Source of the DNA: Macrostomum lignano
Lineage: Eukaryota
Assembly: GCA_002269645.1 (NCBI GenBank)
Contig: NIVC01000815.1
Coordinates: 299,902 to 363,901 of the forward strand
DNA: 64,000 nucleotides
Reading direction: 5' to 3'
Positions 33,808 to 41,417 of this stretch are shown one piece after another. The notes beneath the pieces are model-generated. The model made no database searches. It had not been told where the DNA came from and saw only the letters and a program-made list of their open reading frames with translations. The position numbers were made by a program, and so were the translations under genes. Numbering within the stretch: the stretch's first letter is position 1; every line of letters begins with the position of its first letter.

Positions 33808-36800
33808 CTAAGCTAGTGCAATAATCAACAGGTGCAAAAAGACCAACCTGGGCCCACTGGGAGGCGGAAATCTGCCACCCATAAACGGATCCGTATAAAA
33901 CGACGACGGAGGCCGTGGTCCGAAAAATGCAGGATGCACCGGCGGTCCCAGGCCTCGACCAGGGATCGGTGGTGGATGCTGCTGGAAGCTCCATTGCTGC
34001 GGCTGCATCCGTGGCGCCGGTCTGCGACGTAGCGGCATCTCCTGCGGAGCTCCGGGCATGGAGATGAGCATTGAGTCGAGCTTGCAGCCGCACTGCCCGA
34101 CAGTCAAGCTAGAGTCGCCGCGGCAAAACGCTTCCTCGAGCTTTTCGTTGAGGCCGGGCTCTGGAAGAATCTCAACGGAGCTCCAGGCGCCGTGGCTGCC
34201 AAGGAAGAACCAGCGCCAGTTGGTGGCGAGGGGCCGGTGGAGGCTGGCGCGGCTCTCCGTGCGGAGGCAGCGGAGGCCGCCGGGAGGCTTCAGGTGTCCC
34301 GAGACCGACCGAATCTCGAATCTATCGGCCGAACCGGCAACGAACGACAGCGTCAGCTGACCGGGGAACTCGGAGCCGAGCTCGCCGCTGCCGACCGTCA
34401 CTAAGTCGGAGCGGTCGGGCTGGCAGAAGGCCGCCTCCAGCTGCTCGTTCAGCGCGGCGTCCACGTCCTGCCAGCGGCTCGGCGGCCAGTGGGCGGCCTG
34501 CCACTGCCACAGATAAGGGACCTTGTGAGGGCAGTGCCGCCGAGGACAATTCTGGGAGAAGCATTCGTGCCGGAGGAACTCCTCGCACAGGGTTTCCTCG
34601 CTAGGAGCGGCACGAGGCGCCTTTGGATTGACGGCGGCTGAGACAACGGGCGGCTTTTGCTGCGCTTTTGGGCTGCTGCCGAGTTTCAACTTTGCAATGT
34701 TTGGCACACTGCCTGCGGACAGCTTGCTTTGGCGCTTGCTTTGCAAGTCAGCCTTCTGCTGCTGTTCTGTCGATTGCTGATGACCTCCGAATTGGTGCTT
34801 GCTCGACTGGTGCAGCCCAATTGGCGGCCTGTTTGTACGAATGCCAGAGCGATCCAATTTAATTCAAGTGCACGTCGTTGAGAGAAAAGGGGTGGCGCCC
34901 CAGCCCCAACCAGGCCGATAAACATTTTCCGGCCTCCCTCTTACTGCTTTCTCATTGGCTGAGCTAGATTGGGCCTGTCCTCTAGGCTCTTTCCTTACTG
35001 CTCTCTCATTGGCTGAGCTAAATTGGCCCTGCCCACTAAGCTGAGTTTCGTTTGTCTAACTGTGACCTCTCTCCTTACTGCTCTCTCATTGGCTGAGCTA
35101 GATTAGGCCTGCCCTCTAGGCTGAGTTTCGTCTGCCTTGGGTTCACTTGTGTAAATCGAATTAGTTGTCTGTTCATTCTTCACCCCCATATGCTCCCGAG
35201 GACGCAAACCCCGAGAAAAGAAATTTTAAATGCCACAATAAACTCCAATAACACTTCGCCCAGACTAACTCATGTAAAAAGAATATACGATCTACTTTTT
35301 CACAACAAAAATATAGTGTCTGCCGTGTTAACTAATTAAGTCTTTCACAATTAGGGAGCCTTTAAAAAAAGTTTTTTGAGTCGATCAGTGCGCCCAAACA
35401 AAGATGGCAGTTTGAAGGACTGGTAAAAAACAATCTTACCTAGGACCATGTTGCGGCTGTGGCATAAGCGGCGCAACATTTGACGATTGCTGTGGAGCAT
35501 TGCTTCTAGGAGGCTGATTAACGTTAGCAAAAGCAGCGGGTACTGGATTCGAATTGGTGTTGGGCAGCGGGTCACTGGATAAATCGGAAGCAACAGAATG
35601 AGTCTTCTGCTTTTTATTTTTCTGATGCTGCTGCTCCTGCGGTTGCGGCTTTAAGCCGACGCCTTGAGCGGCATTAATATTTAATAGGCTGGGCACTTCT
35701 GGCTTGGCCTTTTTGCCCTTGGCCTGCTCGGAAGGGGCCAAATCCTTTGGTTTCGATAACTCTTGCTGAGAGGCCACGGCTGGAGGCTCGGGTTTTTCGT
35801 TTGGGTTGGTGTTGGGCAGCGGGGCGGGAATCAAGAAAGACCTGAGCACGTGACCAGGCTCCATCTTGTCCATGTCGAAGGGGAACAGCTTCATCTTGGT
35901 CTGCTCATCCATGCTCAGCACGTGCTGCCTGCGGCAGCGGCACTTGCCGCACTGCTTGAACTTGACGTTGTTGCACAGGTGAATGTCGGCACAGTCAGCT
36001 TGTTGACAGCCGGATTCTGAGTTGTAGGCTGAGCACACCTTCGGGTGGCTGGCCAGCAGCAGATTGAGCACCTCCCGCTGTTTCAGGCCGTCTGCGATGC
36101 CCAAGGCGCTGCGAATTCGGTGGTTGCGGCCGCTGAGGTCGTGGCAGAGCCTGCAGTCCGCCTGAGGAATGCGGAAGGGCATTGGGGCATTTTTAATGAG
36201 GGACTTTGAGCTGTGGGATTCTGAGCTGTGGGATTCTGAGCAGTGGGGCTGTGAGCTGTGGGATTCTGAGCAGTGGGGCTGTGAGCTGTGGGATTCTGAG
36301 CAGTGGGATTCTGAGCAGTGGGGCTGTGAGCTGTGGGATTCTGAGCAGTGGGGCTGTGAGCAGTGGGATTCTGAGCAGTGGGATTCTGAGCTGTGGGATA
36401 CTGAGCTGTGGGATTCTGAGCTGTAGGATTCTGAGCTGTGGGATACTGAGCTGTGGGATTCTGAGCTGTGGGATTCTGAGCTGTGGGATTCTGAGCTGTG
36501 GGGCTGTGAGCAGTGGGATTCTGAGCTGTGGGATTCTGAGCAGTGGGATTCTGAGCTGTGGGATACTGAACTGTGGGATTCTGAGCTGTGGGATTCTGAG
36601 CTGTGGGATTCTGAGCTGAGTAATTAACTTCAAGTTGCAGACTCAGTTGTGGGATGAGACTGATTGCAGGAAGGGGATATTGATCAAATCAAATTGCACA
36701 AGTCAAACGCATCTCCCCACCTTATCATGCACTTTGCCGTCGGGGTCGGCCAGAAACCACAGGCACAGGTGCAGCTGGCAGCAGTCCGCATTCTGGCAGG

Positions 36801-39800: not shown

Positions 39801-41417
39801 CTATAGGGGAGCTTTGACTGACTATAGGGGAGCTTTGACTGACTATAGGGGAGCTTTCACTGACTATAGGGGAGCTTTCACTGACTATAGGGGAGCTTTC
39901 ACTGACTATAGGGGAGCTTTCACTGACTATAGGGTAGCTTTTACCGAGTATAGGGGAGCTTTGACACAATCGGAAAGCAATTTATTGAATGCATTAGCTA
40001 AATGTCAGTAGCTTTCATCGTTAAAAATGTGATCAATATTTCCTCAAATTCCTTACAATGTTTTCCGGCAAACTCTGTGGCGGTCCTAAATCCTTCAGAT
40101 ATTCCGCCTCTTCAATGTCGATTCCATCTGCCTTTTGACCGTCGTCCTCTTCTGTAACATCGACCAACAAATCGTCATCGACAAAGTCGCCATACGAAGC
40201 AACGTCCGATTCGTCAGCGTTGTCGTCGTCCAAGTCGCCGACGCTCGACTGGTTGTCGCCGACGCTGGACGCGGCTGAGGTTAACGACTCGGCTCGGCTG
40301 CTAATTCCAGCGTCGCCTGCGGCAGCTGCCTGCTGACTGCGACAGCGTCTGCAATGACAGGCGCGAGCTCTGCGCAGCTTGGCCTGGTCGTACGGGTCGC
40401 TCACCACAACGAATCGCCACGCCACCTGCAGTACACAATACACACATTTCTGTACATTGTGCCGGTTCTCTACACGCGATGGCTACAAGCGAGGAGTGAA
40501 CCTGCACTCAACACTCCTAGCCGCCTAGCTAGAGGGGGTGGGTGCACTAAGAATAATAATAATAATAATTGATTACACCTGCCCCAAATAGCAGATGCGC
40601 AACCGACAGCTCAGCCGCAGCTATTTGCGCGGCGCATCTGAAGGGTGCGTACGGCTGTTCAGTCCAAGGACTGGGGGGGGGGGTCACCGCACACACCCTC
40701 AATTACCCCAGCTAATGCTGGCACCCATTTTACAGCTGGGTGAACTGAAGCAATGCAGAGTTGTGTCTTGCTCAAGGACATAAATAGTTCTAGTGGGATC
40801 AGGAATCGAACCCCCGACCTTCAAGTTGTAAGTCCGACGCTCTAACCACTAGGCTACAACCCCTAAATAGTTGAGAGACTGAGATAATACTTTGACAATT
40901 CGATAGAACTGACTATTCTATATTTTAAAATATTTTGAATACAGACCTGCACATCCACCCAGTCGGCAGGGATATGAATATTGCGCCGCGCAATAGCCTC
41001 TCGATCAAGCCGATGACTCAGTCGGCACTGCGCATCTCGTGGGCATTTCTTTCCTAGTGCAGTTGATGGACAGCAGTGCAAATTGGGACACTTGGCTGGT
41101 CCTAGACGACACTTGCCACGCCAATAGTGCGTGCAGGGTCGAACAAATGCTTGCCGAAGGATGTACCTGTGGCGCTGTGCCTCGCACTTTGGTGACAACT
41201 TTGGAAAATAGTGTTTCAATATATTCTCATTATGCATTGTCAGGGTTGAATGCGCCATTTTACAGTTGGACTCGGCTTTGCAATAGCCAGCCAGCCATCT
41301 TGGGCATATGTGGAGACTGCAGCACTGTTTATCCTTGCAAATTGCAGCATTCCTATACATTGAGCACAGTTGTAATTTTTTGGGAAAATGAGTGCCCTGT
41401 TGATGCTTAGGAGGCAT
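33808..41417 (-). CDS. ZAP(ZC3HAV1)/PARP12-like CCCH zinc-finger + WWE protein, copy A, ~1250 aa, three tandem N-terminal ZnF domains, no PARP domain seen
   Basis: Exons (minus) 41417-40947, 40425-40057, 39663-39247, 37476-36721, 36161-35440 and 34828-~33808, GT-AG and frame-consistent. Repeated C-x-C-x-C-x-H/LH(I/L/F)C finger pairs, then ZnF-WWE-WWE ([30 protein letters not shown]...[19 protein letters not shown]...[12 protein letters not shown]...LEEAFC...LRRRP). The 3' end is uncertain: stop at 33808, or a donor at 33847. Confidence 0.85.
36205..36620. repeat. 15/25-bp array (ctgagctgtgggatt) in copy A intron; paralogue 61790-62370
   Basis: WDSEL/CGILS pseudo-ORFs. Confidence 0.95.
37490..39240. 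repeat. Two adjacent arrays in copy A intron: ~30-bp (gatggctgtgatgacaagcaggtgactgattg, 37490-38550) and ~23-bp (acagcacaaaacagcaattactg, 38570-39240); paralogues 57205-58390
   Basis: Direct inspection; inverted copies are present in copy B. Confidence 0.93.
39690..39960. repeat. 21-bp array (tgactataggggagcttt[c/g]ac) in copy A intron 2
   Basis: About 12 copies. Confidence 0.93.
40553..40863 (-). mobile_element. tRNA-derived CORE-type SINE with (ATT)n tail
   Basis: Minus strand: gtagcctagtggttagagcg (A box) ... gggttcgattcct (B box), then gtccttgagcaag...ttcagttcacccagctgtaaaatggg resembling the MIR CORE segment, ending in (att)n. Confidence 0.85.

Follow-up and report, generated by a model that had tools for sequence, protein, structure and literature searches.

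Two head-to-head paralogous genes, copy A on the minus strand and copy B on the plus strand with approximately 15 kb between them, lie in a 64-kb stretch of the Macrostomum lignano genome (contig NIVC01000815.1, positions 299,902 to 363,901; 64,000 nt, hereafter the window). Their sequences show them to be a pair of PARP-less members of the ZAP/PARP12 family, and with moderate confidence we read them, by analogy to the family, as multi-module RNA binders that would restrict foreign or selfish RNA. Copy A can be modelled as six exons on the minus strand (41417-33808) with GT..AG borders and compatible phases throughout, resulting in 3756 nt of coding sequence and a product of 1251 amino acids (aa). 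This product contains three RNA-binding units related to the N-terminal domain (NTD) of ZAP, followed by a module of the type ZnF5-WWE-WWE (ZnF: zinc finger) (Table 1). At least two complete NTDs in tandem are present in each copy: copy A has two and an additional finger core, copy B has two, or three if the exon-like segment B3 is included.

The units of copy A were compared with an NTD profile that was built from 20 units of other species (213 positions, no rows from the window) to avoid circularity. All three match this foreign-only profile far beyond chance, with independent E-values of 7e-22 to 4e-32 (at Z=20000). A ZAP-type NTD, consisting of a helical head and four CCCH fingers, was found in units 2 and 3, and unit 1 provides the finger part only: it is a canonical C-x7/8-C-x5/6-C-x3-H four-finger core lacking the winged-helix head, and it is recognized by Pfam as zf-CCCH_PARP12 (PF25261, 27.4 bits). 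The initial annotation had named the right family and had described three copies of the whole domain; two of them are whole, and the third is reduced to its fingers. The helical ZAP-like head it had noticed in front of units 2 and 3 was confirmed by the profile coverage of this region and by matches to winged-helix structures (see below). Units 2 and 3 share 42% identity, and the exon 1 fingers align in register with both at 22-25% identity. The finger ligands are invariant across the three units with the exception of the second ligand of ZnF2.

A family profile combining the window units with the 20 foreign ones matches the ZAP NTD sequences of three crystal structures (E=4e-28 to 1e-25), spanning profile positions 7-203 and chain residues 11-214 with the ITKILCAHGG head included. 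The next-best family, CPSF4, is matched with two fingers only (6e-10). In phmmer searches against PDB the full product matches the ZAP NTD via unit 3 (6l1w, E=2.5e-4; 6uei, E=7.8e-4), and unit 2 alone gave no meaningful match. Unit 2 was modelled with AlphaFold from a 13-row alignment (predicted local distance difference test, pLDDT, 75.6; predicted template modelling score, pTM, 0.65), and the sole significant matches of this model in a Foldseek search against PDB were five ZAP NTD structures (probability 1.00, E 1e-6 to 2e-5, 217-236 columns). Weaker matches following these were winged-helix domains of approximately 50 residues, which cover the unit 2 head. The significant PDB matches of the unit 3 model are likewise ZAP NTD structures only. 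Arrays of CCCH fingers binding single-stranded RNA are also found in CPSF4/CPSF30-Yth1 proteins, and exon 1 showed weak matches to CPSF4 (E 0.013-0.07); however, only two fingers match, whereas exon 1 aligns in register with all four ZAP-type fingers and reaches 78 bits with the foreign-only profile. Orthology of exon 1 to CPSF4 was therefore rejected. To call the protein covalently multimerised, as had been done before, is fair wording: the units lie in one frame, are separated by disordered linkers and are joined in public gene models. The introns within units 2 and 3 are located at non-homologous sites (after ...ARNKE in unit 2 and after ...VHDK in unit 3), and because of this tandem exon duplication, which would fit B3 only, was rejected as an explanation of how the units arose in general.

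A ZnF5-WWE-WWE-type module downstream of the units, likewise reported in the initial annotation, was recovered with three kinds of profiles. Pfam recognizes WWE (25.1 bits, cut-off 21.1) and WWE_4 (21.4 bits) in the exon 6 translation, and a module profile made from foreign sequences only aligns with aa 988-1155 (69 bits, E 5e-19, profile positions 6-161 of 197). A family profile containing the window module and ten foreign ones matches the ZAP ZnF5-WWE1-WWE2 structures over their full length (7kzh, E=1.4e-39; 7sz2, E=2.5e-37); a phmmer search of PDB with the C-terminal module alone gave no meaningful match. ZnF5 is followed by WWE1, and the ZnF5 ligands C13, C21, C26 and H30 are invariant in the module alignment. 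The N-terminal half of WWE2 (...LEEAF) can be aligned, and the closing RRRP motif is kept. Judged from these alignments, ZnF5 and WWE1 are clear, and WWE2 is present but divergent.

No match to the PARP catalytic domain (PF00644) was found in the copy A product or in PAA55276.1, the protein of a third locus in the NCBI annotation of M. lignano. A tblastn search of the 64-kb window with the PARP domains of three relatives gave a best E of about 1; for copy B this search extends 30 nt past the stop codon, where the window ends. The missing domain makes the designation as a PARP less appropriate, not the membership in the ZAP/PARP12 lineage. A few species without a C-terminal PARP domain are known in the ZAP family (PMC8102003).

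When 1.84 billion representative proteins were searched exhaustively with a profile, 685 relatives were obtained, 246 of them at E<=1e-10. A complete unit was defined as a head plus four fingers, and the foreign-only profile was used to count such units in 169 retrieved relatives: 63 have one, 31 two, 21 three, 4 four and 2 five. Two to five complete units are thus present in 58 of the 169, a share in which multi-unit proteins are enriched, since the retrieved list was ranked by total score. Three complete units were found in the 'ZAP1-like' proteins of the corals Montipora foliosa (XP_068694759.1) and M. capricornis, and two in proteins from amphioxus (Branchiostoma belcheri XP_019646028.1, 'PARP12-like'), an acorn worm (Ptychodera flava XP_070560801.1, 'ZAP1-like') and a snail (Pomacea canaliculata XP_025082025.1, 'PARP12-like'). 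The nemertean protein XP_074654097.1 (Tubulanus polymorphus) consists of a finger core and two complete units, which is the layout of copy A, and relatives from a barnacle and a spiny lobster have many finger pairs. Several multi-unit relatives are encoded on intron-free Logan contigs of 3.5-6 kb that barely exceed the coding sequence and are probably transcripts. Flatworm units are 18-27% identical to any foreign unit. As far as these predicted proteins tell, the tandem-module design is a trait common to many invertebrate family members and not specific to flatworms, and the rarity that had been implied for tandem NTDs is contradicted by its occurrence from corals to amphioxus.

The multi-unit proteins differ in their C-terminal parts. 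Relatives from coral, amphioxus and acorn worm keep WWE and the PARP catalytic domain (PF00644, 87-99 bits); those from nemertean, snail and flatworm are without PARP. In the barnacle Amphibalanus amphitrite, XP_043230771.1 and KAF0306226.1 contain approximately nine PARP12-type finger pairs, and one of the two has an N-terminal OST-HTH/LOTUS domain (35 bits). This domain is typical of germline RNA-granule proteins. In the spiny-lobster protein XP_071541360.1 (Panulirus ornatus, 2042 aa), finger units precede each of two full ZnF5-WWE-WWE modules (aa 1025-1239 and 1814-2031); either the whole gene body was duplicated in tandem within one protein, or the gene model is a fusion. Arthropods have been stated to lack the ZAP/PARP12 family (PMC8102003), and Crustacea have been listed as having it (PMC11784840). 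The barnacle and spiny-lobster proteins show that crustaceans do have the family, contrary to PMC8102003. The main evolutionary study of ZAP, which took only five-finger proteins with WWE and PARP, counted a single gene in each invertebrate genome (PMC8102003); by its criteria, multi-domain forms would have been filtered out. A literature search in an incomplete searchable library retrieved no paper dealing with complete NTDs in tandem or with the Macrostomum genes, the gene identifier Mlig010926 included. The proteins of the locus are already in UniProt and NCBI as predictions, and they are further members of a known family.

The CpG pocket of ZAP is formed by ZnF2. In units 2 and 3 the second Cys ligand of this finger is replaced inside a conserved DPDG[K/R]VH motif, the His of which might stand in as a ligand. 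Among 170 retrieved proteins, this motif occurs in only five, all from M. lignano, and 122 have the canonical ZnF2 spacing. Residues reported for the CpG specificity of ZAP are C96/Y98, K107/Y108, F144 and E148/K151/R170 (PMC9253567). The ZAP chain of 6l1w was aligned with the window units using hmmalign, which showed that C96 is V in units 2 and 3 and C in unit 1, Y98 is N/D/A, K107 is G/R/Q with K in unit 1, Y108 is L/L/M, F144 lies opposite a gap, E148 is A/K/N, K151 is A/S/L and R170 is D. Unit 1 keeps only C96 and K107. The CpG-binding pocket was found in none of the units, and a ZAP-like CpG read-out, brought up in the initial annotation, is not upheld; by these substitutions, the RNA motif read by the flatworm modules is probably not CpG. 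The observed/expected ratio of CpG is 0.65 in the whole window and 0.89 in the coding sequence of copy A, and because 'self' is not strongly CpG-poor, a CpG read-out would not be expected.

The flatworm proteins share with the short isoform of ZAP (ZAP-S) the central ZnF5-WWE1-WWE2 module and a product without PARP domain. They differ from ZAP, which has one NTD, in the number of NTDs (two complete ones and a finger core in copy A, two to three complete ones in copy B), in the non-conserved pocket residues, in the lineage-specific ZnF2 variant and in the divergent second half of WWE2. The PARP domain is absent from ZAP-S by alternative splicing, whereas no PARP-coding sequence was found near the flatworm gene. 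With invertebrate PARP12/ZAP-like proteins they share the order of tandem complete NTDs and ZnF5-WWE-WWE; in contrast to them, the coral, amphioxus and acorn-worm proteins keep PARP, and the ZnF2 variant is confined to M. lignano.

According to the proposed mechanism, each NTD-type module would bind single-stranded RNA via its CCCH fingers, as the ZAP NTD does. Two or three such modules on flexible linkers would allow multivalent, avidity-driven recognition of RNAs in which a short motif occurs several times, and this motif would be one other than CpG. The ZnF5-WWE part together with the low-complexity tails could act as an adaptor or target the protein to condensates, and the protein itself would not carry out ADP-ribosylation. 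The role would be restriction or surveillance of foreign or selfish RNA of viral or transposon origin; given the family membership, such an antiviral or anti-transposon function is plausible. In Nematostella, the two paralogues are among the genes most strongly induced by 2'3'-cyclic GMP-AMP (2'3'-cGAMP) (PMC11784840).

ZAP is a leading example of an innate sensor for which sequence composition separates self from non-self RNA, and in vertebrates it has to form multimers on the RNA before it can act; how the number and spacing of motifs are read is debated. Natural proteins with two to five ZAP-type domains in one chain are ready test cases for avidity-based RNA recognition, and the tandem domains across invertebrates are a more interesting lead than the single locus. 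A far-reaching and rather unlikely extension would be that such arrays, widespread in invertebrates with 2-5 domains per protein, are possibly ancestral and read the motif density on foreign RNA, and that Macrostomum lost PARP and rebuilt ZnF2 as a Cys-His variant whose new RNA specificity would match a genome without strong CpG depletion. Since M. lignano is tractable by RNA interference and transgenesis, the PARP-less paralogues with remodelled ZnF2 are directly testable.

Several observations weigh against this interpretation of the two genes. The superposition of the unit 2 model on the ZAP NTD is moderate (template modelling score, TM, 0.39-0.43; root mean square deviation approximately 11 Å), and the unit 3 model, obtained from a 6-row alignment, is poor (pLDDT 57.8), matching the ZAP NTD at TM 0.26-0.30; both predictions are limited by shallow input alignments. 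Of the comparison with the ZAP NTD fold that had been suggested as a check, the part resting on profiles and Foldseek, which single out the ZAP NTD, thus came out positive, and the rigid-body superposition fell short of a demonstration. Homology of units 2 and 3 to the ZAP NTD over the full domain is well supported. Since the canonical second Cys is missing, the ZnF2 finger of the complete modules could have lost its function. In WWE2 the last third is gapped, leaving profile positions 162-197 unaligned, and the Tyr and Gln columns conserved in relatives are C and I in the window protein, for which reasons binding of poly(ADP-ribose) by the module is doubtful. A search of the literature for expression, induction or knock-down data from M. 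lignano retrieved none. Finally, the public protein models A0A1I8H8H3 and A0A1I8GJV8 both end at an in-frame TAA (35436-35438), which shares bases with the exon 5 donor AG|GTAAGA.

From the last observation it follows that copy A may be without the WWE module; whether it has one depends on the splicing of candidate intron 5. The first four exon junctions (exons 1-5) match exactly those of A0A1I8H8H3 and A0A1I8GJV8. A0A1I8H8H3 follows the copy A model for 454 aa, then lacks 95 aa within exon 4 and is identical again up to the end of exon 5; this may be a within-exon alternative splice or a prediction artefact. The 95 aa correspond to ZnF3-4 of unit 2 and the linker. The join of exon 5 to exon 6, which brings ZnF5-WWE-WWE to copy A, we infer from a phase-compatible candidate acceptor (34829/34828, with seven more in-phase AGs downstream) and from copy B (open reading frame 62387-63970) and PAA55276.1, in which the NTD part and the WWE part form one continuous frame. 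Of the single spliced product proposed earlier, the exon 1-5 joins hence agree with the public models, and the attachment of the WWE part in copy A is inferred only.

Copy A could accordingly consist of NTD units only and terminate at the TAA behind exon 5, the downstream ZnF5-WWE-WWE sequence being a leftover of the duplication, unused or confined to a minor isoform. We hold this to be quite possible, if doubtful. The two public models, one of which (A0A1I8GJV8) stems from a second locus, stop exactly there, an insertion of approximately 800 bp relative to copy B (35568-34764 versus 63011-63047) lies at this point, the polypyrimidine tract at the best in-phase acceptor is weak (0.55 pyrimidine), and the C-terminal tail past 34000 is unrelated to that of copy B. 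However, the donor AG|GTAAGA is strong, several in-phase acceptors are present, and no AATAAA follows the stop codon, the sole variant being an ATTAAA 570 nt downstream (34863). In addition, the exon 6 frame is open for 349 codons and 98.3% identical to copy B, with a ratio of non-synonymous to synonymous substitution rates (dN/dS) of 0.36, which is unlike an unused relic, although the duplication is recent. An NTD-only copy A would resemble human ZC3HAV1L, but that protein has a single NTD and arose by a recent mammalian duplication (PMC8102003), and the resemblance would be convergent. Candidate intron 5 also contains three direct repeats of approximately 55-65 nt (...GCTCAGCCAATGAGAGAGCAGTAAGG...; 34933-35131, minus strand) in the stretch specific to copy A.

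Restriction of foreign RNA, as we propose, has to be weighed against the view that the proteins are general or germline/stem-cell RNA regulators (storage, decay, granules) and not immune sensors, the tandem CCCH fingers raising the affinity for endogenous targets. We think this somewhat unlikely. It would agree with the fusion of OST-HTH/LOTUS to approximately nine finger pairs in the barnacle relative, with the missing PARP domain and CpG pocket and with the lack of signs of positive selection between the copies; moreover, human PARP12 also has functions outside immunity, and RNA binding by it was not detected (PMC8102003). On the other hand, alphavirus replication is inhibited by each of the three human CCCH-finger PARPs, which also have a part in the antiviral effect of interferon-gamma, and the cnidarian paralogues respond to cGAMP (PMC11784840). 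Variation in copy number and domain number among paralogues, as seen here, is typical of defence genes.

Copies A and B share an inverted segment (39654-34000 in A, 56792-63811 in B) with 88-98% nucleotide identity. Over 841 codons there are approximately 23 synonymous and 27 non-synonymous differences (dS 0.03-0.055), giving a dN/dS of 0.27-0.71 and about 0.37 overall, values that are imprecise with only some 50 substitutions, a further reservation about our interpretation. By these comparisons, the duplication is recent, both copies are moderately constrained, and positive selection is not indicated. The initial annotation had suggested diversification; this is not reflected in dN/dS, and the copies do differ in exon and unit content. 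The 5' boundary of the duplication (39654/56792) is located at the start of copy A exon 3 and the 3' boundary (34000/63811) within the last coding exon, and because of the latter the C-terminal tails of A (Pro-rich) and B (Gln/Gly/Met-rich) are unrelated. Intron 3 of copy A is nearly filled by minisatellite arrays (37486..39236; periods 23/56/79 and 32/49/64/144/194), similar arrays are found in intron 4 (36207-36618, period 15) and intron 2 (39683-39962, period 21), and the intron arrays are kept between the two copies.

In copy B, no AG acceptor upstream of exon B1 and no homologue of copy A exons 1 and 2 upstream were found in the window, and the last exon has no intron at the position of candidate intron 5. 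In B3, the second half of a unit, divergent in sequence (AKCQLCHDL...), is followed by a linker and by a head nearly identical to that of unit 3; the segment would add exactly one unit. Its 884 nt are not a multiple of three; the frame shifts at an A6 run (61309-61314), where one extra A restores continuity. The UniProt model of the locus, A0A1I8H940, skips B3 and joins B2 directly to the last exon, and PAA55276.1 is 98.9% identical to B1, B2 and the last exon combined. As annotated, copy B is a two-unit protein. The different trio of units that had been attributed to it exists only with B3 included, which is frameshifted and skipped by the public models of copy B and its paralogue, and it requires that the frameshift is an assembly error; this trio is doubtful.

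These features could also be expected if one or both copies were decaying pseudogene duplicates in a repeat-rich region, with the multi-unit frame as a functionless relic, an explanation that we regard as improbable. The B3 frameshift, the absence of exons 1-2 and of an upstream acceptor in copy B, the stop at the exon 5 donor and the divergent C-terminal tail of copy A, and the dN/dS of 0.71 for exon 3/B1 would fit decay. Against it, every other exon is open in both copies, the zinc ligands are intact, the overall dN/dS is about 0.37, near-identical proteins are annotated at two or more further loci, including that of PAA55276.1, and the frameshift lies in a homopolymer and may be an assembly error. 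Least likely, and very improbable, is an annotation or assembly artefact fusing neighbouring single-NTD genes: although the gene model is without direct cDNA support, minisatellite introns are prone to assembly errors and the public models differ in detail (the 95-aa skip, the skipped B3), units 2 and 3 cannot be separate genes because they share exon 4 in one open frame across the linker (as do the corresponding units in exon B2), two- and three-unit relatives are found on the transcript-like Logan contigs, and the only 42% identity of units 2 and 3 also led us to reject an assembly repeat.

Table 1. Features of copy A, copy B and neighbouring genes in the window.
Feature	Position	Strand	Description
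Copy A exon 1	40947..41417	-	ATG at 41417; unit 1; donor CAG|GTCTGT
Copy A exon 2	40057..40425	-	acidic, probably disordered linker; phase 0-0; no Pfam domain above threshold
Copy A exon 3	39247..39663	-	first half of unit 2: winged-helix-like head, ZnF1, variant ZnF2 (C...DPDGRVH...C-x3-H)
Copy A exon 4	36721..37476	-	unit 2 ZnF3-ZnF4 and C-terminal helices; Pro/Ala-rich linker; unit 3 head, ZnF1, start of ZnF2; phase 0-0
Copy A exon 5	35440..36161	-	remainder of unit 3 (end of ZnF2, ZnF3, ZnF4); Q/P/N-rich tail
Copy A candidate intron 5	34829..35439	-	611 nt; inside stretch of approximately 800 bp without copy B counterpart
Copy A exon 6	33808..34828	-	basic linker, ZnF5 (C-x7-C-x4-C-x3-H), WWE1, divergent WWE2, Pro-rich tail, stop codon
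Unit 1	40998-41384	-	aa 12-140; 78 bits, foreign-only profile 62-184 of 213 (fingers only)
Unit 2	39573..37198	-	aa 311-512; 108 bits, foreign-only profile 4-200
Unit 3	37032..35829	-	aa 568-782; 112 bits, foreign-only profile 7-211
ZnF5-WWE-WWE module, copy A	34599..34018		aa 989-1182; ZnF5, WWE1, divergent WWE2
Copy B exon B1	56789..57199	+	homologue of copy A exon 3; own ATG (MEKQEPYKD...)
Copy B exon B2	58405..59172	+	homologue of copy A exon 4: end of first complete unit, linker, head of next unit
Copy B exon-like B3	60808..61691	+	no copy A counterpart; AG/GT borders, phase 0; 884 nt
Copy B last exon	62417..63970	+	end of unit, linker, ZnF5-WWE-WWE, Q/G/M-rich tail; one continuous frame
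TEAD/Scalloped-type transcription factor gene	6160-10260	+	Pfam TEA 54 and 30 bits, YBD 38 bits
HMG-box gene	18103-21338	+	very long Gln-rich stretches; PF00505, 36.5 bits

The top database matches of the spliced copy A product are the UniProt entries A0A1I8H8H3 (100%) and A0A1I8GJV8 (89%); the latter, from a paralogous locus, is named 'Poly [ADP-ribose] polymerase 12'. Both are M. lignano proteins, and the window is therefore flatworm nuclear DNA. Copies A and B have ordinary animal genes as neighbours, namely a TEAD homologue and an HMG-box gene. In intron 1 of copy A, a string resembling a tRNA was discarded, since no tRNA was called. In the TEAD/Scalloped-type gene, the TEA domain extends over two exons and is followed by the YAP-binding domain, and the introns are long minisatellite arrays that read as open frames. 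The HMG-box gene is flanked by CT/CA and GA-rich microsatellites on the kilobase scale (21364-22820 and 23868-24808). Copies of a repeat of approximately 280 bp (85-89% identity, some inverted) are located in the 15-kb spacer between copies A and B (42159-42433, 44485-44763, 46001-46163 and 47292-47578); this repeat may be a small transposable element and is possibly tied to the inverted duplication.

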